A stretch of DNA of 64,000 nt, taken from the NCBI RefSeq assembly GCF_001194135.2, contig NC_068998.1, positions 17,334,746 through 17,398,745 on the forward strand. Reading direction: 5' to 3'. The translations under genes were made by a program, and so were the position numbers. Of this stretch, positions 6,081 through 60,300 are shown piece after piece; position 1 is the stretch's first letter; every line of letters begins with the position of its first letter. Below the pieces are notes generated by a model, which ran no database searches, was not told the origin of the DNA, and worked only from the letters and a program-made list of their open reading frames with translations. Origin of the DNA: Octopus bimaculoides (Eukaryota).

Positions 6081-6464
6081 CTCTTTTACTTGTTTCAGTC
6101 ATTTGACTGTGGCCATGCTGGAGCATCGCCTTTAGTTGAGCAAATCGACCCCAGGACTTATTCTTTGTAAGCCTGGTACTTATTCTATCAGTCCCTTTTG
6201 CCAAACCGCTAAGGTACGGGGATGTAAACACACCAGCATCGGTTGTCAAGCGATGTTGGGGGGGACAAACACAGACACACAAACACACATACATATACAT
6301 ATATACGACGGGCTTCTTCCAGTTTCCGCCTAACGAATCCACTCACAAAGCTTTGGTCGGCCCAAGGCTATAGTAGAAGACACTTGCCCAAGGTGCCACA
6401 CAGTGGAACTGAACCCGGAACCATGTGGTTGGTAAGTAAGCTACTTACCACACAGCCATACCTG
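6081..6464 (-). mobile_element. tRNA-derived SINE family A, near full length
   Basis: Element strand has A-box TGGCTGTGTGG, B-box GGTTCAGTTCC, a CORE-like GTGGCACCTTGGGCAAGT box, a central TG/TA microsatellite and the tail ...TGAAACAAGTAAAAGAG. Confidence 0.9.
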
Positions 6465-7849
6465 CTAGTAAATTTTGATGTAGGGAACAATAATAAGCTA
6501 ACTAGAAATAAGCACGCAATAAAAAAAAATAAACATTGGTTATTGAGTAATATTATTTTAATACATTTGGCAAGTATTGGAGACAACCTTGATCAGGTTC
6601 TGATCTAGTTATGACTTCATCAGTAATACATAAATCTTCTGTAGATTCAGTGATTCTATGGTAAGGAGAGGAAGTATATTTTTCACTAATGAGGTTACAA
6701 TAAGATCAAAACATGTCATGAGTTATATCCCATACTTGTCAAATTAACTAAAATAATATTAGAACTATTGATAAAAATTGTTTCCTTTTATTCATTGCAT
6801 AATCATTTTTAGTTGAACTTATATTGTTCCTTGCATTAAATGTGTTAATGCTAACTTCACTAAATATGGAATGTTTGATTAGACAATGGTGAGAATATCA
6901 CAGCTACAACACCTTTGATTATAGGCGTACTGGATGACCTGGGGTTAAAAAACAACGACATCAACAACAACAACTTAAAATGAGTTGGCCTTGAGTCATT
7001 GAGAACCGAATATCTTTTCCTTGGCTTAATCTGAATGAAAAAAATACATTTTAGAGATTATTCTGCCAACTAAAATTATCTGTCAATCATGTTGGAATTT
7101 ATTTTAGTGAGACAATTCTGGATAAAAAATTTGTAAGGAAGTGTGTTGAATCCTTTTTCACTCAGGGGATCTATGCTAGCTGCATTTTCAGTGCAGAAAA
7201 AGCTTTCTTCAAAGGTTATCAATATTTTTGTGGTACTTTGCATGTGTTTGAACTCTATGTGTGAGTGTGTGAGAGCGAAATGTAAGCACAGACAGGCAAA
7301 TGGACAGAAAGATAGATAAAAAAAAAAAGATACATAGAGGGAAGGAGAAGTGAGTAAGGGAGAGAAAGGAAAAGTGGGCAGTTGCAATGTGTGTGTGTAT
7401 ATATCTGTATATCTGTATCTCGCTCTATATATAGATAGATAAATACAGATATATGATAGATAGTTAGAGAGAGACAGAAACAGAGAGAGGGTGAGGTAAG
7501 TGGGAATGTGATAGCGGGTTAAGTAGATTGAGAGATGTACAGACAAAGAGATAAAGAGACAGCATATGAATGACACTACATAACACAATATTAATTACTC
7601 AGATTTCTAATACAATATGTAATTAAAAACATACTAATTTGATAAATGATAGCTAGCCCTGCTTTTTAATTCATGTTATCTATGTTACATAATTTTACAT
7701 TAACAAAAAAAAAAATACAAGAAATAAAATAAAATACAATTAACCAAGTTGTTATTTCAAAGTAAGGATCAACATTGACTCAACCTTGATCGAGAAAACA
7801 TATACATTCCAGCCATGACCACCTCAACATATTTAGGAGTATTCTTTTA

Positions 7850-8358
7850 TACTTTTACTTGTTTCAGTCATCTGACTGCAGCCATGCTGGAGCACCACCT
7901 TAAGGGGTTTTTAATCAAAGAAATCAATTGAAGACCTAGTACTTATTCTACCAGTCTCTTTTGACAGAATGTTAAGATACAAGGACACACCAACATCGGT
8001 TGTCAAGCAATGGTGGGAGGACAAACATAAGGTCACACAGTCACTCACACACACACACAAATATATATATATGGGCTTCATTCAGTTTCCATCTACCAAA
8101 TCCACTCACCAAGCTTTGGTTGGCCCTAGGCTATAGTAGAAGGTACTTGCCCAGTGTGTCATGCAATGGGACTGAACCCAAAACCATGTGGTTGGGAAGC
8201 AAGCTTCTTACCACACAGCCATGCCTGGGCCTGTATCTAGGGCTTTTTTATTATAACACTTTAGTATTCAAACTTGCCCAAGGTGCCACGCAGTGGGACT
8301 GAACCCAGGACCATGTGGTTGGTAAGCAAGTTACTTACCACACAGCCACTCCTGCGCC
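7850..8358 (-). mobile_element. SINE family A copy plus a second tandem head (8268-8358)
   Basis: Same head, body and tail motifs as 6081-6464. The head segment (ACTTGCCCAAGGTGCCACGCAGTGGGACTGAACCC...CCTGCGCCT) recurs about 45 bp downstream. Confidence 0.85.
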
Positions 8359-9797
8359 TTGAACATTTTTCAATACTAACAAGAAAGAACTCATTAAACA
8401 ATTCAAATCCAAAAGGAAAAAAGTCAGAAAATAGTTAAAGCATTAATAATGAAAAAGAAAGGCGTTGGAGGGGCAATGCATACCCTGAGTGCAGATAAAT
8501 TTATTTGCAAATTACAGCGTGACTTACAATGCATTACTTACCCATACTTTTTAATTCAAATGAGTAATTTTTTTTTAAGTATCACCATTATTCTAATTCT
8601 ATTAAGTGAAATTAAGAAATCAACTCATAGATAAATGAAACCCTTGAATCCATCAGTGTACACACATACATGCACATATCTATGTAAGTGCTTATGTATG
8701 TACACACACGTGTCTACGCGCATAGATACACCATGATCTGTATACATACAGATGAGGATCAATTCATATGAAAAAGAAAGTGAACAAAATAATATGACCA
8801 CTTGCTTATCAGGAAATTTGTAAGTTTGATTTTGAAAAAGCCTTTTCTTTTTTAAAGATAATCAAACCAAATGTTCATCATTTTGAGTCACTCACCCAAT
8901 GAGTATTTCTACCAAATGTGGTGAAAATCCATTCAGTTGTTTTCCAGTAATTTTGCAAACACACAAAGATGAGTGATTACAATACCCTGCTTTTGCTTGT
9001 GCACGCAGGGTAATTAGAAAAATTTCTCTTTTAGTTATAACATTTTCCTTGATATTCTTTGGAACTGAAATCTGCTTCTCCATCCCCTATTATTATAGGG
9101 GATGTCTAACACCTAGAGTAAAATTCAAATGCTATAAATTCTATTTATATATATTATAAATTGTGCAATTGGATAAAAAATTTGAAGTATTTAGAATAAA
9201 AAGTAAGAAAATTTATCTAAAAAAATCCCAAAATAAAACAGTCTAAAACACTGAATTGAAAATAACCATAATTTTTAAGGTATAGCTGTAGTAAGATTTT
9301 AATAATTTCTAAGACAAAATACTGTTTAAGCATATTGCTGGCAGAAAACCAATTTGGCTTTCTAAGATATAAGTCAACATAAGACATGATTTTTATTACA
9401 TATCAACACTGAGCAACAAAGAAATTCTTTGCATATAGTTGCTTTAAGAAATCAATGACCGAATTGATTATCAACCTGTATATTTTATATCAGAATAAAA
9501 CCACTAAAATATATGTTTATTAATCATCCATATGCATTGTAGCTGTCATAATATGGTCAATTTCAACTTCACAACAGCTGCTACCAAAGAGAATTGCAGG
9601 TATGTCTTGTGAACTGAATGTGAATTTTTCCAATATTACTAAACATTAGTGAATATCATCAATATTTATGTCTCGTCAAATCTGTGGCAACAATAAGGAA
9701 TATTCAATAGATTTATGATGATTTTTTTTTCTTTCACTGATGAAGCACACCCATGTGGGCTATCAAAAGACGAAAAGAAAAAGCCAATATACGAATA

Positions 9798-14254: not shown

Positions 14255-14627
14255 TTAATTTGTTTTAGTTATTTGACTGTGGCCATGCTGGAGCACCACC
14301 TTCAAAGGTTTTAGTCAAACAATTTGACCCCAGGACTTATGTTTTTAAACTCAGTTGATGTAAACACACCAACACCAGTTGTCAAGTGGTGGTGGTGGAC
14401 AAACACAGACACACATAGATATATACATACACACATACACATAGATGCACACATACACACATATACGACAGGCTTCTTTCAGTTTTCATATAACAAATCT
14501 GCTCACAAGACTTTGGTTGGCCAGGGGCTATAGTAGAAGACATTTGCCCAAGGTGCCATGCAGGGAGACTAAACACAGAACCATGTGGTTAGGAAGCAAG
14601 CTTCTTACTAGACAGCCATGCCTGCAC
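14255..14627 (-). mobile_element. SINE family A
   Basis: Same motifs as 6081-6464, more diverged. Confidence 0.85.
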
Positions 14628-14683
14628 CTGGTAAATATGGTAATTACATCCATAGAAAGACTTCAGAAAAATCAAAAAATTGT

Positions 14684-15509: not shown

Positions 15510-15542
<33 letters not shown>

Positions 15543-15707
15543 TAGGATGGTCTTTCACACAGTTTCCATCTACCAAATTCACTCACAAGGCATTAGTTAG
15601 CCTGAGGCTATAGTAGAAGATACTTGGCCAAGCTGCTGTGCAGTGAGATTGAACTCAAAATCATATGGTTGTAAAGCAAGTTTCTTAACAGCACAGCCAT
15701 GCCTACA
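15343..15707 (-). mobile_element. SINE family A
   Basis: Tail TTTTACTTGTTTCA..., TA microsatellite, head ...CACAGCCATGCCT. Confidence 0.85.
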
Positions 15708-27691: not shown

Positions 27692-29487
27692 TGTAGTGGC
27701 GCGTGTGGCCGCCATTGCGCATGTGCAAGGGATTTGCCGTCAGCGGAAGTACCCGAGCACGCATGCGCAATGCAACAGGTGGAGAAAAGCAATAGCGTTC
27801 TCTCTCTTTTCCATCTAGCAGCTGTGGCAACAGGACGTTCTTTCAGGCTCTGTCCCAACTCGACCCCGACATGTGGTCGAAGCTTCCTTTGGTATTCTAG
27901 GGGCATGCCTGTTCACCCAGGAACGAAACGGCTCTACACCAACCTAGAATAAACTATTGATACCGTTATCCCTCGTGTTGTTGTATTTCTGGATTTTAAT
28001 GATTAATATAAGAACTGGGGAGAGACGGCCGAGCCGTCATATCTCATCTAATTCTTATAACTGGTGACCCCCGACGTGATACAGAATCTCTCAAACAACT
28101 CGTAAAAAAATGAAGAGATGACGAAAAAAAAAACAACAACACAAGAGACGAGGGAATGGAACAACCAACTGCAACAGTTTTCTTACCCCGGAGNNNNNNN
28201 NNNNNNNNNNNNNNNNNNNNNNNNNNNNNNNNNNNNNNNNNNNNNNNNNNNNNNNNNNNNNNNNNNNNNNNNNNNNNNNNNNNNNNNNNNNNNNNNNNNN
28301 NNNNNNNNNNNNNNNNNNNNNNNNNNNNNNNNNNNNNNNNNNNNNNNNNNNNNNNNNNNNNNNNNNNNNNNNNNNNNNNNNNNNNNNNNNNNNNNNNNNN
28401 NNNNNNNNNNNNNNNNNNNNNNNNNNNNNNNNNNNNNNNCACACGCACATACATAAAATTTTTTGCCTGTATTGTTTTTTTCCTTGCAGCAACGACGTAA
28501 GGTTGGTCAACAATATTTTTTTCTACAGACAGTACAAAGCAGCACCTTCTGAGGTCTAGCCGCTGACCACAGAGCACACAGCCAGTTCCAGCGACGACAC
28601 GACAATAGCCTCATGGAGTCCCAACACTTCGTTCAGCAGCTTACGGACCTCCAGCTTCTTAGGGTCAACACCAATTTCTTGCTACGTACACAACAACCAA
28701 CAGCACTCGCACAGGTTCTATCTCAACACTGTTTGTGAATTATTTCACCATGGTTAAGAGCGAATACAACCTGCGAGGACTCCTGTATCAAGTAACCGGC
28801 AGCAGCATTGAAACCACAACCTCTCACGACATGTGCCTCTCCTCTGGCTCTATTACGCGGCCTCGACTTCTTGTTACAGCACCTCAACTACTGTGTACCT
28901 TAACTACGAGCTGGTATTTACCATTCTTGTGTCTGGACTTTCTGTCAATGTCCTTAGAGACTCCTTTCTATGCTCTGTATTTCTCGCACTCCAAAGTTCT
29001 TTAAGGTCGACGCTAATGGTCGTACAGAGATTGTGTCTGTCGACCGTCTGAAAATAGCGTACCTTGACAAACCCTCAACTTCCGTGGACGACGTGCACTG
29101 TCAACATCTTTACCAATGCATACACCAACATCAACACCATCACAAACACACACACCAGAAACCACTCCACCTTCGTCGTTGCGACAAAAACTCAAGTGAC
29201 ACTTATGTCACTAGATCTGGCCGGACAGTGCATTGGCCAAAGAAACTTTCCAAAACAATATACATTTGACATTTTTTGTGCCGCCGGCATTTCATTTCTC
29301 TGTACAAACAAACATTGTTTTTCTTCCATTTCTGTGCACAGTAACGTGCTAAAAGAAAATATGTACACATTACATATTGTTTCAACCTTTGCATACACAT
29401 TTGCTCACGCCATTATAGTGGCGCGTGTGGCCGCCATCGCGCATGTGCAAGGGATTTGCCGTCAGCGGAAGTACCCGAGCACGCATG
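27692..29487 (+). mobile_element. Gypsy (CsRN1-like) non-autonomous LTR element 1, 3' LTR truncated
   Basis: 5' LTR 27692-28059 (TGTAGTG...TTATA). PBS TGGTGACCCCCGACGTGAT at 28062-28080 is complementary to the tRNA-Trp 3' end with one extra C. gag-like start MEQPTATVFLP; integrase tail SRTPKFFKVDANGRTEIVSVDRLKIAYLD...VTRSGRTVHWP. The first ~73 bp of the LTR repeat at 29415-29487. Confidence 0.85.
28194..28439. other. Assembly gap (246 N) inside LTR element 1
   Basis: N run. Other gaps: 9850-9859, 18328-18462, 23455-23464, 32896-33164, 38372-38381. Confidence 1.
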
Positions 29488-30182
29488 CATTATAGTGTAA
29501 TGTAGACGAAAATGAAATCTCTGTATGGTTATTTCTTCCGTAATATTTTTTGAACTCGGCTCTACTTAACTGCAAATAGGTACCTGTTGGACCCCTTCAC
29601 TCCTACGTATATAGCTTTACGAATAAATGTTCGGCCCTGCAATCTCTGATGCCCTGTCATGGAAACGAGATGTATACTACATAGGTAACTATGTCTCCTT
29701 CAGGTGCTTGTTTATTCTCATGTCTGCTTTGACCTACCAGAACTATGATCAAAAGCTTTCCAATCGTGATAATATCTTTCTTTTTTTTTTTTTTTTTTTC
29801 AGACAGTGTTCCTCCTGAAATCCATAGCCGAAAGAGGCTGTTGACGCGCAGCAACGCGTGGTTCACTAGTCAGGTAATTTAATACTGTCTTATCTCTTCT
29901 CCAAGTATAGTTGACAGTTTCCTTGTGAGAAGCTATTCTATCCTTAGACAGGGTTTATTTTTAACCCGGCTGGATTCCCACACACCCTCTCTTAAATCCA
30001 CTGGGTTATCGAGGGCGGTTTAGTTGCTAAGGTAGTAAAACCTGACCTGGTCACCATAGTACATCTAGGACTACATTATCCTGTTAATATGCAGTTTACC
30101 GTTGTAAAGCAGTGAAAGAAAATTATCCCAAATAAGTAAAAAAAATATTGCGATAAAACCAGAAGTAACAACAATGACATAC

Positions 30183-30306: not shown

Positions 30307-30468
30307 CTATACATAGAGAAACAAACACTGCTGAGAAAGCAATTCGGTGGCTTCCATGAAAGCCAACACAGTTACATGTGACCAATGCAATAATACGGCA
30401 CGATCAATGAGCTGTAGAGAAAGAATCAACGGGAAGCGGTAGCATTTTTCCTTTGGATTCACTGGAAC

Positions 30469-33400
30469 TATAGGAAAGTGGTTATACACCATTAGGTGTA
30501 CACCCGCTTTCCTATATTAAATTCTAAATAATAACGGAACGCAGAACTCTGAACTATCAACACAACAATATTTATTTATGGAGGAAAATAGTCTTGGTTG
30601 CTGAGACGTTGGAATGCTGGAGAGACAGCTTGACCCGTCCATGCTCATGGCCGGCCGACCGAGAAAGAGAATGAAAAAAGCGGGAACGTTTAGATGTTGA
30701 ATTCCACGCATGCGCATGAGACTCTTCCCGTGTTCCTTCCGGGACTATTCTCTGCGCATGCGTGGATGAAAACGCAGTAATGGCGACTGTATTTTGGCGC
30801 CAAATGACGTCACTACAATGGCTCCCCCTCGAGTGTGGAAGCACGAAAATAGAAATTTTGGAGGGACGTCTGAGGCAAGATGGCCACTGAAACCAACCAC
30901 AAGATGTGGCACAAACACACACAAAGAAAATTAAAGAAATGAATGTACACTTGTGAGATACATGCATGCAATCTGAAAGGAAAGAAAGTATATGAGTGTG
31001 TGTGTGAGAAAAAACACAGAACATAGTAAAAGTGTCTGTAACAGACTGTGAAAAGTCTTAAAACACTGAGATGGAGAAAACCAGTTCGTATAAAAATTCC
31101 ACAAGGAGATAGAATGTTAATACGCAGGAAGTTGTGGTCAGTGAGCAGAGCTGTAGTTGAGCGTCGGATGCTAGTTGGGACCTGTTACCTGGTACTGAAT
31201 ATTCTATAAAAGTTATACAAGGAGATTCAGAATGTTAATACGCAGGAAGTTGTGGTCAGTGAGCAGAGCTGTAGTTGAGAGTCGGATGCTAGTTGGGACC
31301 TGTTACCTGGTACTGAACATTTTGGATGGTCTGTTGATCGTGAGTGGAAAACATCCACTCTAACAGAGTCAAAATAAAATCGCGCTTGTTGATGTTGGTT
31401 GCTTGTGTACGTGGAGAAATCATGTTGCTGGTAGTATATTGAGTCGTATTGCTGTTGGCGACGTCGGGGGGCGATGCTTGTAGTTTGTCGTGGTTGTTGA
31501 TGTCGTCGCTGTAAAACTGGCTGTGTTCTGTATGTGTGGTGGTAATGATGTTGACAGTGGTGTGTGATGTTTGAAAAGGTACGCTTTCTCAGACCGTCGA
31601 CAGACACAATCTCTGTACGACCATTAGCGTCGACCTTGAAGAAATTTAACCCAAGACTGCGGTTGGGCGAGGCGTGTAATGAAGCCTTAAATTGCCTATG
31701 AAAACACTCAACCATTCCATTAGAAGCGGGATGGTAGCTGTTGGTGCGTATCAGGAGAGAGAAATTGGACAGGGCGTCTATTTGAGAGGTACCCTTGAGT
31801 GGCATTGTGAAATGCTGTCATGAATTCGGAGACTGACATGTAATTGTGCATTTTTACTGCTATTTTCAGCAAGTAGAGGACGCTGTGTAAGAATGAATTG
31901 ACGTCGCGTGAAACACGTAGGAAATTGCTCAAAAAGTTGTTAGGATGAAATAACCGTGAAGTTTTTTGTGTGAAAAACCACAAAGGTCTTAGCAATAAAG
32001 AAGTCTTTGTTTAGAGGCTCTAGAAGTCATTGACAAAATGAGAAACTTTAACGTAGAAAAAATTTTCTTAGCTTTTCACTTGTTTGATGAGAGTGTAGAG
32101 GCAATCCTGATGTTGAACGTCGCGAAGCATACGAATTCAATGGCTGTTGAAATGAGGTCCATAGATCTTTTAGCTCGAGGTACCAATTGTAGTATTATCG
32201 GTCGCAGTTCAGATTTTCGTGGCTGCGGTTGTTCTTTTAGTCGGGTCACCAGTTGTAACATTATTGGTCGGTAGATCAGAATCCTCGGCTGCGATTGTTC
32301 TTTGTTCGGGGTCACCAATTATAGGAAAGTGGTTATACACCATTAGGTGTACACCCGCTTTCCTATATTAAATTCTAAATAATAACGGAACGCAGAACTC
32401 TGAACGATCAGCACAACAATATTTATTTATGGAGGAAAATAGTCTTGGTTGCTGAGACGTTGGAATGCTGGAGAGACAACTTGACCCGTCCATGCTCATG
32501 GCCGGTCGACCGAGAAAGAGAATGAAAAAAGCGGGAACGTTTAGATCAGTGTTTCCCAACCTTTTTTCCCGGCGCCCCACTTTTTCATAGCAAAAGTTTT
32601 TACGCCCCACCTTTTGCAAACTTCAAAAACTCCACCGCGTATTGACGAGTCTTCTTCTTGTTTGGTTTGCTCATTTTCAATAGGGCTAACAAAAGATATT
32701 AAAATTGAAAGGTACAGTATTGAAAGTCTCGGGAGATGACACAAATCCAAGAAAGCGATGGAGACGATGAATTTTGCAGTGTGAAAAGAAAGTGATTCGT
32801 GGAAACAACCGGCAACAACGAGTCACCTGAGCTGAGTTGGCTGCTGCCTTGAAAAAATCACTGCATAGTTTATGTTGAATAAAGAGCTGTGGTTTNNNNN
32901 NNNNNNNNNNNNNNNNNNNNNNNNNNNNNNNNNNNNNNNNNNNNNNNNNNNNNNNNNNNNNNNNNNNNNNNNNNNNNNNNNNNNNNNNNNNNNNNNNNNN
33001 NNNNNNNNNNNNNNNNNNNNNNNNNNNNNNNNNNNNNNNNNNNNNNNNNNNNNNNNNNNNNNNNNNNNNNNNNNNNNNNNNNNNNNNNNNNNNNNNNNNN
33101 NNNNNNNNNNNNNNNNNNNNNNNNNNNNNNNNNNNNNNNNNNNNNNNNNNNNNNNNNNNNNNNNGTATAGGGATGCGCGTAAGTTTATTGCTCAGTGCGG
33201 GATCTTCTTTGTCTCGCTGGGGTGCGAGAGTTTCCGATGTGGAGGCTTCAAAGGAAAGACGGAATCTAAGGTTGTGCCTGCGATGACCGCTCGTCATGTA
33301 CAAATATTTTCACAGCCCACGTCTATGCCCCGCGCCCCACCTGAATTTTCTCAGGCCCCACCTTGGGAATCACTGGTTTAGATGTTGAATTCCACGCATG

Positions 33401-33505
33401 CGCATGAGACTCTTCCCGTGTTCCTTCCGGAACTATTCCCTGCGCATGCGTGGATGAAAACGCAGTAATGGCGACTGTATTTTGGCGCCAAATGACGTCA
33501 CTACA
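30469..33505 (-). mobile_element. Gypsy (CsRN1-like) non-autonomous LTR element 2, both LTRs intact
   Basis: LTRs at 30469-30817 and 32320-33505 (the latter interrupted by a hAT). 4-bp TSD GAAC at 30465-30468 and 33506-33509. PBS TGGTGACCCCG at 32317-32307. PPT GAGGGGGAGCCAT next to the 3' LTR. Integrase remnant RTNSYHPASNGMVECFHRQFKASL fused to FFKVDANGRTEIVSVD. Confidence 0.95.
32547..33375. mobile_element. hAT/Charlie-like non-autonomous DNA transposon inserted in the 5' LTR of element 2
   Basis: TIRs CAGTGTTTCCCAA / TTGGGAATCACTG. Perfect 8-bp TSD GTTTAGAT at 32539-32546 and 33376-33383. A single GTTTAGAT sits in the sister LTR at 30688-30695. Confidence 0.95.
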
Positions 33506-33919
33506 GAACTATACAAGCCAATTACGTTTTTGAGAAGAGCGAATAATAATTCAGTTAATGTACATGTGGGCAAGAGACTATCTACTGAACGAAATTATTT
33601 TTACTTCTAGTTTGTATCTAAGTTTACATTCATTTTTTAGGTCAATTTACTTTCACTCTTTTTTACAACAGTAAGCTGCATATCAACCCATTTATCCAGT
33701 GTGCTCTTCCCCGTTTTCGACGTCACAAAAACCCCCAACCCTAAACACCGGGTGTGCATATTCTTTACCTTCGCCAAGGAAGAGTTGGTTGCTATTTCTA
33801 ATAGGTCAAGAAACTTCGTAGGGACGTGTTCGTTGTGTCGATAAAGTAAAACAGGTTCTCCAACATGGATGGAACCCACCCTATATCTTTCACATTCCGT
33901 TCAATTGTGTTACTAATTA

Positions 33920-34087: not shown

Positions 34088-34266
34088 TACATCATAGTGT
34101 AATGTAGACGAAAATGAAATCTCTGTATGGTTATTTCTTCCGTAATATTTTTTGAACTCGGCTCTACATAACTGTAAATAGGTACCGCGGTAAGTAACAG
34201 TTACACAATGAAATTGATGAGTAATATTTTTAATGGCTGAGAAGACGAAAGGCATGTACCCATGAC

Positions 34267-34456
34267 TGACTCATTAAAAAATTTCTCTAACTGATGGGGG
34301 AAGGCATCCCTGAATACACGCATCAGACTGGACCCCGCTAAATGCTCTTATGAGTCAGATCTGATGCCTGAGTGCTTTTAGTGGGGTCCACTGTGATGCG
34401 TGTATTCAAGCCTCCCTCCTTTCCTCCATTTGTTATGGAAGTTTTGAAATGAGTCA
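34267..34456. repeat. ~190-bp imperfect palindrome (foldback element)
   Basis: Arms TGAATACACGCATCAGACTGGACCCCGCTAAA and TTTAGTGGGGTCCACTGTGATGCGTGTATTCA, centred on TCAGATCTGA. Outer ends TGACTCATT / AATGAGTCA. Confidence 0.85.
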
Positions 34457-42019: not shown

Positions 42020-42362
42020 ATCGTTGGAGTGCGGCCATGCTGGGGTACCGCTGTGAAGGGGTCCAGTCGAACAAATTGACCCCAGTACTTATTTAAGCCT
42101 GGTTCTGTTCTGTCGGCTTCTTTTGTCGAACCGCTGTTACAGGAATGTAAACAAACCAACACCGGTTATCAAACGGTGGTGAGGTACAAACATCACACAC
42201 ACATGACGGGCTTCTTTCAGTTTCTGTCTATTCAAATCAGTTCACAAAGCTTTGGTCGGCCTGCAGCAATAGTAGAAGACACTTGCCCCCAGGTGCCATG
42301 CAATAAAACCGAACACAAGACCACATGGTTCAGAAGCAAGCTTCTTAAGTACACAGCCACAC
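42020..42362 (-). mobile_element. SINE family A
   Basis: GCGGCCATGCTGGGGTACCG...GACCCCAGTACTTAT...GACGGGCTTCTTTCAG...CACAGCCAC. Confidence 0.85.
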
Positions 42363-51978: not shown

Positions 51979-52379
51979 ACTCTTTACTCTTTTACTTGTT
52001 TCAGTCATTTGACTGCGGCCATGCTGGAGCACCGCCTTTAGTCGAGCAAATCGACCCCAGGACTTATTCTTTGGAAACCTAGTACTTATTCTATCAGTCT
52101 CTCTTTGCCGAACGGCTAAGTTACGGGGACGTAACCACACCAGCATCGGTTGTCAAGTGATGATGGGGGGACAAACACAGACACACAAACACACATACTT
52201 ATATACATATATATACAACGGGCTTCTTTCAGTTTCCGTCTACCAAATTCACTCACAAGGCTTTGGTCGGCCTGAGGCTATAGTAGAAGATACTTGCCCA
52301 AGGTGCCACGCAGTGGGACTGAACCCGGAACCATGTGGTTGGTAAGCAAGCTACTTACTACACAGCCACTCCTGCGCCT
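51979..52379 (-). mobile_element. SINE family A, best-preserved copy in the window
   Basis: Full head AGGCGCAGGAGTGGCTGTG...GGTTCAGTCCCACTGCGTGGCACCTTGGGCAAGT with CpGs retained, and full tail. Confidence 0.95.
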
Positions 52380-57169: not shown

Positions 57170-57325
57170 TGCAAAAGTCTTCTTTCAGTTTCCATCTACT
57201 GAATCTACTCAGAAAGCTTTGGTGGCTCAGGGCTGTAATAAAAGCACTTACCCAATGTTCCATGCAGTGGGATTGAACCCAAGACCGCATGGTTGGGAAG
57301 TAAGCATCTTAATCGCACAACCACA
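57170..57325 (-). mobile_element. SINE head fragment
   Basis: TTTCAGTTTCCATCTAC...CATGCAGTGGGATTGAACCC...TGGTTGGGAAGTAAGCATCTTAATCGCACAACCAC. Confidence 0.75.
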
Positions 57326-60300
57326 CTAGTGACACTAAATACAAATACTGCAAACATATAGTAAGTCAAAAAACTTTTGTATCAGTTGTGTTTAAGCAAT
57401 TAGTAGACAAAAATTACCTCTAAGGAGTAACACCTATAGACAGTCAGCAGTTAGAGATTGTCCAAAACTCACTCTGTGTGTTGTCAGTTTATCCTATTAT
57501 TATAGTTTAGATGACTCAATAACACTGTTGCTCTTATGAACTCATTTTCAAACTGAATATTCAACAATTATTCTTAATGTCTATTTTAATGATTTTAATG
57601 TTCTCATTAATACTTTCCATTACAAACAACTAACAATTAAAAGTTTGCTGCTGGCTTATTCTAAAGGTTCTTGTTATTTCTCAATTACCATTATCAATTT
57701 TTTTTGTCATGCCATAAATGCTACCTGTGGTCTTTATGCAGTATTCACTTTTCACTTTGTAGCATCTTTAACAAGATTTGTATCACTGCACAGTTTTTAT
57801 TGTTGATGCTATAGTTGTGCTGTGACCTATATTCTTTGAGCTTGGAAACCAATAATTGTTTTCCTTAATGTTATTAACAATAGCACTAGATTGTGTTTGG
57901 AAGGTAACAACTTTTTTCTCTGAGTTCTGAAGCTGAAGTTTCTGTACAAGATCTGCTTCAATTGTGAAAACACAGACGGTTAAGAGGCTAAATTTAACAA
58001 TCAACTGTGAGATCTGAAATTTGTGTCTTAGTTTTGTGATGTATCCAAGATATTTAATTCTCAATGGCAGTCCAACATGTTACAAATGGATGGAACAGAT
58101 CTTTGCTGTAGGTTGTAGCTGCTCTGGTTCAATGCCTCTTACATGAAAATATACCTGTGATAGACCAACATCCTCTTCAGTGAGAAGTCCATCTCTTCTG
58201 ATTTGTGCTGCTGAAACTGAAGATCTCTAGCCTTATGGACCTTTGTTCTTTAGAAGAGATTGGTTGTTTTTCATCAGTTGTTGTTGAGTGAATTTGTTTA
58301 TGCTAAGAGGCAATATAGATGCTCAATTTCTCTTAGAAGGCAATCGATTTTTATCTTTTAAGAGATTTGTTATTTATTTTTCTGGTGTCGCATGTTATTT
58401 TCAACCTTAAAGTTGTGTACACGCTGAGATTTATTTGCCAAATGATAGATTCTGTTAATGATTACGGGTATTCTAAAGCAATATAATGAATCTTTTTGAT
58501 CATTAAATCAATGGATTATTCACTGTCCTTTTCTATATGGTCCAATCTCTAAGTCAGATTGGAATTACTTTTATATTACCATTTGAAGAGTGTTTATAAA
58601 TGTGTTTCCTCATTGTATATCATGCAGTTCTAGATGCTTTGACAGATATTGCTATCAGGTGTAACAGTATCTGTGTTTGGTAATATCAATGTTGGTGGTG
58701 TATGCTTGTCAACAGAAGCTTCTTTTTCAAATTTTCTTTTGAAAATAGTCAGTATAGCTCTCTGAGGGAGACCTGATATCTGGGGGAAAAATATATATAA
58801 TATTGCAGATTTTTGATAAAAATGAACTTAGAGGTTTAAACACTGACAATATATTCTTTTTACTGCTATAAGTATTTATTACCTTGCTTATCAATAAAGT
58901 GAGCAACACTGGAATGCAGAGGCTGTATATTTTCCTTGATCATTTCATATACATGATTGATTGGTTTTTAAGGCCTTTTTAAAAGCATCAATATAAATAC
59001 ATCACAATCAAAATCTCAAGCCATAGAGAAGTTTCCTATTTTCATTTCCCCCTCACTTCCACCATAGTAGCTGGCTATTATTTTGTCATTACTGCCAGCT
59101 ATAGTAATTTTATCAAAACCCCATGTCGTGATTGGCAACATTATTTGCTTTTCTGAATACTACTGTGTTTTTGTGTAAAAGGCATTTATATAGTTACTGA
59201 AGAAAACTAGTTATTGTACCAAGCTGATATGAGTTGCAAAGTAACTGGGGAAAATATTCGCAAAGCTTTTGAATAGCCTTGTGTTTGCACACAGTGTATG
59301 TGTATATGTTAATAGGTGGCATCAGATTTAATTATCAGTTTTATAGCTTTTATCTTACATTTTATTATATTTTAAACTTGTGTAATTTCTATAAGTTTTG
59401 TTTTGAATTAAAAAGCTGCACAGTTATATTCAGTGAACTGAAATGAAAAGGTTGTTAACATTTGTCTCCTAAGAGTAGTGAAGTTGAGCTTTTGAAATTA
59501 TTGGAAACCATTAAGTGGCAAGAATATCTGGAGTTTGTTGAAATTAGGATCTGTGATGATAGGTGTATTAATGCAGGTGAATGGTAGCTTATTCATCTCA
59601 AAGAATTGCAATAAAATAAATATGGAGTTTATGACCTATTGAGGTAGCTTGTCAATGGTCACTTGACTTGTAGAAAAGAGTAGTCCATTCTCCTCCTCCC
59701 TGTCCCACCCTACTATCTTAGTTTTTATTGTAATTGTATTCACATCTTGAATGCATTGTATGTATATATAAATTGAATCAGTATATGACTGGTACATATT
59801 GATCATGGAAAGGTATAACTAAATACTGCGAGGTATTTTTCCTGCTCTGATGAGTCTGCCAAATTCTCTGCCTCTATCTTAAAGAACACATATAATGTCT
59901 AGTAAATGATTATGGGGTTTGAAAATATTGCCATGGCTTTGTTTAGAGGTCTGCTTGATCAAGACTTGCTTTGGGTAAAGTGGAAAAGTAGCTAAAAAAA
60001 AAAAAAAATTACTACTGAAAACAAGTTTTAATTTTCATAATTTAGTTTTTCCTAAATTCAAATATTTCTTTTATGTAGATTGAAATGTCACCATCTTAAA
60101 CATGAATATCAATTTTAAAATATTCAGTTTGAAGAAGAAAAATAGTGTGCATGCAATGCACAATGTAAATTAAAATCCATAGAAGGAAGGTTCAGGGGGT
60201 GGGAAAAATAAAATTTTGTAGCTGTAAAAGAATATGATTAAAATAGCCATTTCTGATGGCAGCATACACTAATTATTCATGACCTGTGATTTGTGAGATT

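Follow-up and report, generated by a model that had tools for sequence, protein, structure and literature searches.

The 64,000-nt stretch of Octopus bimaculoides contig NC_068998.1 analysed here (hereafter the window, in whose coordinates all positions are given) carries two long terminal repeat (LTR) elements, E1 on the plus strand and E2 on the minus strand, whose LTRs terminate in hairpins that in the 5′ LTRs stand 2 nt ahead of the primer-binding site (PBS) for reverse transcription: a 53-nt hairpin in E1 (28007-28059, +) and two identical hairpins of 48 nt each in E2 (30469-30516 and 32320-32367, −). We consider it slightly better than an even bet (a probability of roughly 0.55) that these hairpins represent a stem-loop which acts in cis and is conserved where U5, the unique 5′ region of the LTR, has its 3′ end in Ty3/Gypsy elements of the CsRn1 clade, and that they are the counterpart of the retroviral U5 inverted repeat (U5-IR). 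Since helices at this point are enriched among relatives beyond controls, and since stem pairs have undergone compensatory changes, the structure looks selected, as an earlier note on this DNA had proposed, though it is not universal.

The 368-bp 5′ LTR of E1 (27692-28059, +) begins with TGTAGTGGCG and terminates with TTCTTATA; its start is backed by the 3′ LTR fragment at 29416-29488 (98.6% match), its end was placed from the PBS 2 nt downstream, and it has blocks in common with the E2 LTR. The hairpin reads TATAAGAA..GAGA-GACGGC-CGA-GCCGTC..TCTC..TTCTTATA, followed by the spacer AC (28060-28061, +) and by a tRNA-Trp-type PBS with one extra C, TGGTGACCCCCGACGTGAT (28062-28080, +). It folds both as RNA, with a minimum free energy (MFE) of −22.0 kcal/mol (z-score −4.66; 0/200 shuffles equally good), and with DNA parameters (plus strand −10.6, z −3.6; minus strand −10.0, z −4.4). 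The 5′ LTR of E2, read on the minus strand, runs ...CTTTCCTATA, then AT (32318-32319, between hairpin and PBS), then the 12-nt tRNA-Trp-type PBS TGGTGACCCCGA (32306-32317). Its hairpin has an RNA MFE of −27.5 kcal/mol (z −7.75; again 0/200 shuffles equally good, in folds of the single hairpin) and, with DNA parameters, energies of −14.5 and −14.3 on the two strands (z about −8). In both elements the stem closes on the final LTR base, 2 nt ahead of the PBS, and for E2 we can place this closure on the very last base because a GAAC target duplication (30465-30468 and 33506-33509) fixes the LTR end independently of the hairpin. The hairpin lies in U5, as AATAAA is found 55-75 nt upstream of the LTR end (27948-27953, +, in E1, a polyadenylation-type signal that aligns with AAATAAATATTG of the E2 LTR), and it occupies most of U5 in E1 and E2 alike.

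The positions that the earlier note had assigned to the three hairpins agree with our sequences and folds, and its statement that the stems close exactly at the LTR end is borne out. The compensatory A-T/G-C swap that it had read between the two elements is likewise present (TATAAGAA/TTCTTATA in E1 against TATAGGAA/TTCCTATA in E2). Its description of the LTRs as otherwise dissimilar holds roughly, but the two LTRs have four blocks in common (TGTAGTG at the 5′ end, CACGCATGCGCA, AATAAA..TATTG and TTAATATARGAA), their global identity of 60% compares with 54.6±1.4% in shuffles, and the integrase remnants are related, that of E1 being 91% identical over 80 nt to E2 31569-31647. E1 and E2 are therefore diverged relatives, in which the outer stem has been kept and the inner stems are wholly different in sequence, each still self-complementary.

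Both elements are very probably internally deleted members of the Ty3/Gypsy CsRn1 clade, an assignment that we base on the tRNA-Trp PBS, the 4-bp target duplication and the CHCC Gag of fuller relatives. These three features are hallmarks of the clade (PMC2582038). The genes gag and most of pol are gone from both elements, and the integrase remnants, C-terminal only, match Octopus 'K02A2.6-like' fragments at 41-57% identity. We gathered relatives through the integrase of a fuller one, locus L001, whose Pfam domains (RT_RNaseH_2, Integrase_H2C2 and rve) make it a Ty3/Gypsy element and whose integrase matches Gypsy Pol proteins from Schistosoma, cestodes, insects and spiders (45-57%); the collection consists of octopus loci and 80 metagenome loci, and comes from a few assemblies. 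Most of the 80 loci have a TGGTGACCCC-type PBS, placed ~2.5 kb upstream of integrase. The PBS is of tRNA-Trp type in about 55 related loci, seven of which have the perfect 18-mer TGGTGACCCCGACGTGAT; this 18-mer we take, with PMC2582038, to match tRNA-Trp. Neither Rfam (at gathering thresholds) nor a tRNA scan gave a match within the window, and a search of 31 loci turned up no tRNA-Trp gene. The Gag CHCC motif, CX2HX9CX3C, is present in 25/35 of the relatives found through integrase, including octopus L124, L125, L127 and L213, and target duplications are 4 bp long (GAAC in E2, GATC in L125, AGTC in L127 and GTAG in L210). Viral contigs searched with the integrase, singly or as an alignment, yielded 1-2 weak loci; a scan of such contigs for TATA-N(1-3)-TGGTGACCCC returned chance matches in phage contigs only (L003-L122) and was discarded.

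The published LTR ends of the CsRn1 clade are 5′ TGTGGYG and 3′ MSYYAMA (Benachenhou et al. 2013, PMC3601003). Most relatives fit them, starting with TGTAG or TGTGG and ending in ..CTACA or ..CTAAA. The 5′ ends of the E1 and E2 LTRs, TGTAGTGG and TGTAGTGA, are near the TGTGGYG motif. In the 3′ ends, TTCTTATA and TTCCTATA, A-T-A stands in place of A-M-A, which puts them outside the published consensus. The LTRs of E1 and E2 (termini at 27692, 28059, 30469 and 30817) thus start with the canonical TG and end in TA, not CA (..TTATA, ..CTATA). Relatives' LTRs end in ACA or AAA, and the upstream hairpin partner shifts in step with the end: TAT, TGT or TTT.

To measure how far a PBS-adjoining helix extends across the clade, we reduced the LTR-PBS junctions to 39 non-redundant families, each <70% identical to the others over the last 110 nt. 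Only Watson-Crick pairs were counted in the helix-length tests, because G-U pairs let the TGGTG of the PBS dominate the helix-length profile. When the mean longest perfect helix is plotted for each end position, its maximum (4.28, with a baseline of 3.24) lies 3-4 nt ahead of the PBS, and helices of at least 6 bp end at this point in 21-26% of families as compared to ~3% elsewhere. The best perfect helix ending 1-4 nt before the PBS reaches at least 6 bp in 14/39 families, as against 11.3% at 20 other anchor points used as a positional control (binomial P=5e-5) and 6.0±2.1 families, with a maximum of 12, in 300 shuffles in which the terminal 14 nt were held fixed. The result persists when the two window elements are taken out (12/37, P=5e-4), and metagenome loci on their own, with octopus/ENA loci removed, give 10/33 (P=2e-3). 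MFE folds of the 110 nt upstream agree: in 29/39 families pairing stops 0-3 nt from the PBS, compared with 17.5±3.2 (maximum 25) in 100 shuffles and 10-24 at other anchors. The clade-wide enrichment of a helix at the PBS is real and moderate.

The commonest spacer between helix and PBS is 2 nt (15 families), the expected length of the dinucleotide cut off by integrase. Arm sequences vary widely (GTAGTG/CACTAC, TTGGAG/CTCCAA, TTAGCG/CGCTAA, ATATATGTGG/CCACATATAT and TGTTGTG/TACAACA), and loop length ranges from 3 to about 90 nt across families. Single loci illustrate the pattern: octopus L212 has a 57-nt hairpin (8377-8433 of that locus; −27.2 kcal/mol, z −5.4) that ends 2 nt before its PBS, and L001, L124 and L127 have closing helices at the same PBS-adjoining point. 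The PBS of the Schistosoma mekongi locus L214 is degenerate, with a weak possible 5-bp terminal helix that is visible by eye and is not chosen by MFE, and the Sparganum locus L215 has no usable PBS. Two further measures were set aside. An energy profile of the best domain closed at a given position proved uninformative, since weak closing pairs enclose any upstream structure, and in a constraint-based variant of it pairing was not enforced.

Seven compensatory changes bear on selection for pairing: three within the E2 family, one between L132 and L133, two among L171, L175 and L180, and the one between E1 and E2. For the E2 family we compared six LTR ends (a pair each from the window and L124, plus single ends from L210 and L211), among which three inner-stem pairs are altered on both sides, once from U-A to C-G and twice from C-G to U-A. 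This amounts to 5 cells against 1.5±0.9 in shuffles, none of 500 shuffles scoring as high; decayed solo copies of the family (e.g. L211 and L124b) have uncompensated changes, as expected after insertion. ATAGC/GCTAT in L132 and L145 becomes ATCGC/GCGAT in L133, and among L171, L175 and L180 two of 23 predicted pairs are compensated. MAFFT alignments of the distant families, which are not structure-aware, gave no consensus fold; the compensatory changes are supportive and do not replace a large covariation test. The earlier note had named absence from most relatives and a lack of covariation as the outcomes that would speak against a selected structure. Neither is what we see, with a terminal helix in 29/39 families and compensatory changes among relatives.

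How might such a helix work? Within genomic RNA, arranged R-U5-PBS-..., the terminal 5-10 nt of U5 would base-pair to a complementary stretch lying 15-90 nt upstream, giving a helix that abuts the tRNA-Trp:PBS duplex across a gap made up of the 1-3 nt later trimmed by integrase. The abutting helix could set the geometry of primer and template and promote the start of minus-strand DNA synthesis, and its 3′ arm would double as the U5 integrase recognition end (..ACA, ..AAA or ..ATA). Because they form the integrase end, the outermost bases of the 3′ arm would be constrained and the 5′ arm would follow them; deeper in the stem both arms would be free to co-vary. We infer that the hairpin acts in RNA, on the initiation of reverse transcription, because the only invariant is the placement of a helix directly against the PBS, because it is only at the RNA's 5′ end that U5, where the hairpin lies, adjoins the PBS, and because the nearest precedents, the avian U5-IR and the U5-IR-like structure of Tf1, reportedly have that role.

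Several observations weigh against this reading. A stricter MFE criterion gives 18/39 families as compared to 10.3±2.9, and the terminal 10-mer duplex scores −6.4 against −4.8±0.6, both modest enrichments. The terminal helix is missing from the MFE fold in 10/39 families, so that the feature is not universal, many terminal helices are only 4-6 bp long, and there are only seven compensatory events, some drawn from 3-6 sequences. Nor is there a strand asymmetry: the sense strand is the more stable in 13 families and the antisense strand in 13, and G-U pairs make up 40/392 pairs on the sense and 38/385 on the antisense strand. With stability and G-U content equal on both strands, a role at the RNA level is not demonstrated. 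Finally, we found no excess of extra pairing between U5 and the T, anticodon or D arm of tRNA-Trp, for which a vertebrate tRNA sequence was used; duplex energies of U5 with the T arm have a mean z of 0.00 over the 39 families, with 1/39 below −2, and an additional tRNA contact of the Rous sarcoma virus type is therefore not evident.

A packaging or dimerisation signal would account for the hairpin differently: binding of the CHCC Gag, or RNA-RNA contacts, would favour packaging of hairpin-bearing RNAs, deleted non-coding ones included. Packaging and dimerisation signals typically sit in the 5′ leader region, as the hairpin does, the non-autonomous copies keep it intact, and the strongest hairpins are found in three octopus deletion derivatives. 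We nevertheless regard this explanation as unlikely. The apical loops, CGA in E1 and UAAU in E2, are not palindromic, no conserved loop sequence motif was found across families, and what is conserved is only adjacency to the PBS and closure on the LTR end, which priming or integration fits better; moreover, the trend with autonomy is anecdotal, three elements being set against five. The same trend underlies a distinct and still more doubtful proposal, in which the U5 hairpin serves as a cis-signal for competition and has grown stronger in non-coding deletion derivatives specifically. Mini-elements would thereby outcompete their autonomous partners for Gag or reverse transcriptase, a parasite-of-parasite adaptation that might act jointly with the triplicated PBS of the E2 leader (see below). 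The octopus deletion derivatives do have the most stable hairpins (E1 −22, E2 −27.5 and L212 −27.2 kcal/mol), those of the CHCC-Gag-bearing relatives L124, L125, L127, L213 and L001 being about −7 to −17 kcal/mol.

Alternatively, the element could operate in DNA, as an inverted copy of the U5 terminus within double- or single-stranded complementary DNA (cDNA) that offers integrase an extra contact or assists plus-strand strong-stop transfer. This would suit the equal folding of both strands with DNA parameters, the absence of sense/antisense asymmetry across 29 families, and the exact coincidence of the 3′ arm with the integrase-processed end; the 5′ arm, which opens T(G/A/T)T(A), also resembles the U3 terminus TGTAG. 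However, the likeness of 5′ arm and U3 end is lost after 4-5 nt, a loop of 3 to about 90 nt is hard to fit to a fixed protein-DNA geometry, and we know of no intasome that requires an internal inverted att copy, which together make a DNA-level role rather improbable in our estimation.

It is also conceivable that the helices have no selected function and are by-products of an A/T-rich U5 and short terminal motifs, the octopus hairpins being family-specific accidents inherited from one ancestor. E1 and E2 are indeed related and so are not two independent observations, the clade enrichment is moderate with 10/39 families devoid of a terminal helix, and the decayed copies L211 and L124b carry uncompensated changes. 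Against this stand the excess over positional and shuffle controls, which remains when the window or the octopus loci are left out, the seven compensatory changes, and the inner stems of E1 and E2, which differ in sequence and are both still paired; we hold an origin by accident to be very unlikely. An effect of the 3′ LTR hairpin, downstream of AATAAA, on cleavage/polyadenylation or polymerase pausing is more far-fetched still, for although AATAAA lies 55-75 nt before the LTR end in E1, E2 and relatives, the LTR terminus is meaningless for polyadenylation, and closure of the helix at the exact LTR end, 1-3 nt from the PBS in many families, would be left unexplained.

The remaining features of E2 are as follows. 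The element, an internally deleted one, spans 30469-33505 (−). Its 349-bp 3′ LTR (30469-30817, −) begins, on the minus strand, with TGTAGTGACG, terminates with CTTTCCTATA and is preceded by the polypurine tract region, ..GAGGGGGAGCCAT (30818-30835, −), the GAGGGGGA/AAGGAGGAGCCAT context of which recurs in L125 and L210. An open reading frame (ORF) for the integrase remnant (..SYHPASNGMVECFHRQFK.., FFKVDANGRTEIVSVD) covers 31227-31805 (−). The two LTRs are 97.8-98.5% identical: the U5-proximal part of the 5′ LTR (32320-32546, −) is 97.8% identical to 30466-30695, and its U3-proximal part (33376-33505, −), separated from the rest by a transposon, is 98.5% identical to 30688-30817. The inserted DNA (32547-33375) is 829 bp long and includes an N gap. 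It shows a target duplication of 8 bp, GTTTAGAT, as well as the terminal inverted repeats CAGTGTTTCCCAA / TTGGGAATCACTG, and looks like a hAT-type non-autonomous DNA transposon.

The E2 leader (32174-32317, −) contains two 66-nt tandem units, running from 32317 to 32252 and from 32251 to 32186 and identical at 52/69 positions; Tandem Repeats Finder missed this repeat. Each unit opens with the tRNA-Trp PBS-like TGGTGACCC and closes with ..TTACA or ..CTACA plus 2 nt, resembling a canonical LTR end. With a third PBS-like site, TGGTACCTCGAG, at 32185, the PBS is thus present threefold. Inside E2, at 31089-31321, lies a 118-bp tandem duplication (2.0 copies, 94% matches). LTRs of the E2 type occur in three further O. 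bimaculoides loci at 77-93% identity (L124 12090-12419 and 15871-16254; L211 1877-2157; L210 6037-11405), and the family is therefore multi-copy, with sub-lineages. One copy of the E2 family is a 5.4-kb element with a GTAG target duplication and the LTR end ..CTCTCCTAAA. A protein search with an ORF inside the E2 LTR, aimed at more LTR copies, gave no match.

E1 is a dead relic: its polypurine tract has degenerated, its PBS contains an insertion of 1 nt, and its 3′ LTR is truncated or chimeric. Its internal region holds a gap and the ORF of the integrase C-terminal remnant (FFKVDANGRTEIVSVDRLK...TRSGRTVHWPKKLSKTIYI*; 28970-29269, +), which has Octopus homologues. All that is left of the 3′ LTR is its first ~75 bp (29414-29488, +). 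In the region 29409-29584, CATTATAGTG repeats flank this 75-bp fragment on both sides, and after the fragment comes a 97-bp sequence beginning with the LTR-start-like TATAGTGTAATG, which is repeated at 97% identity 4.6 kb downstream, beyond E2 (34090-34186). This repeat pair around E2 could come either from a 3′ end of chimeric origin or from a third element, with short LTRs, that encloses E2. No E1-type LTR was found in any other locus collected for comparison.

The window as a whole has ~34% G+C and contains assembly gaps and microsatellites, and the top protein matches of its retroelement remnants are to O. bimaculoides and O. sinensis. A dispersed repeat of up to about 390 bp, probably a short interspersed nuclear element (SINE) or a miniature inverted-repeat transposable element (MITE), is present on both strands in at least 8 copies of 75-91% identity (among them 6081-6465, 7846-8233, 14425-14632, 15529-15704, 42206-42360, 51987-52375 and 57179-57327). 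At 34302-34417 two 58-nt inverted repeat arms, 78% complementary, adjoin with zero spacer.

If the reading of the hairpins as a CsRn1-clade U5-IR is correct, the U5-IR principle extends to an old, tRNA-Trp-using invertebrate branch of Ty3/Gypsy elements, and a helix that abuts the tRNA:PBS duplex and shares bases with the integrase end would be ancestral or repeatedly reinvented, not a retroviral speciality. It would also give non-autonomous elements a named cis-requirement. It opens no new mechanism. In practical terms, the rule of a helix closing 1-3 nt before the PBS could make it easier to annotate PBSs and the ends of LTRs in the genomes of molluscs and flatworms.

As to novelty, the earlier note had supposed the hairpin to be undescribed for this group. 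The searchable literature on the clade and on LTR structure gave us no account of a U5-terminal hairpin in elements of the CsRn1 clade, and to that extent the supposition stands; structures of the same kind are, however, well known elsewhere, reportedly in Rous sarcoma virus and Tf1. A close prior record within the clade is the set of end motifs in PMC3601003, which in the relatives coincide with the 3′ arm of the hairpin and which were modelled there as linear integrase motifs, without a pairing partner in U5.

Comparison with better-known systems places the octopus hairpins as follows. Structures flanking the PBS in HIV-1 (human immunodeficiency virus type 1), such as the A-rich loop and the primer activation signal, and the extended contacts that Ty1 and Ty3 make with tRNA tune tRNA-primed initiation. 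They too are cis-acting RNA structures around the PBS, but they need extra pairing between tRNA and template, which we did not detect in the octopus elements. The fission-yeast Ty3/Gypsy element Tf1 is said (Lin and Levin are the reported source, from 1998) to use a U5-IR-like structure in reverse transcription, and thus has a structure of this type serving the same process in a Ty3/Gypsy retrotransposon. Tf1 is a self-primed chromovirus, whose own 5′ end pairs with the PBS, whereas E1 and E2 carry tRNA-Trp-type PBSs, unlike a Tf1-type self-primer, and very probably belong with the CsRn1 clade. The nearest likeness is to the U5-IR of Rous sarcoma virus (avian sarcoma/leukosis), reportedly a stem-loop that supports tRNA-Trp-primed reverse transcription and overlaps the integrase site. 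As there, a stem-loop made by an inverted repeat within U5 stands directly 5′ of a tRNA-Trp PBS and overlaps, on its 3′ side, the end of U5 that integrase recognises, an arrangement that genomic RNA has at its 5′ end only. The octopus hosts of the structure differ in being invertebrate Ty3/Gypsy retrotransposons, not retroviruses, in having far longer hairpins (48-57 nt, −22 to −28 kcal/mol) and in showing no detectable complementarity of U5 to the tRNA T-loop. Given that a U5-IR is known in Rous sarcoma virus and has been reported for Tf1, the hairpins described here would be an extension of a known principle rather than a new one.

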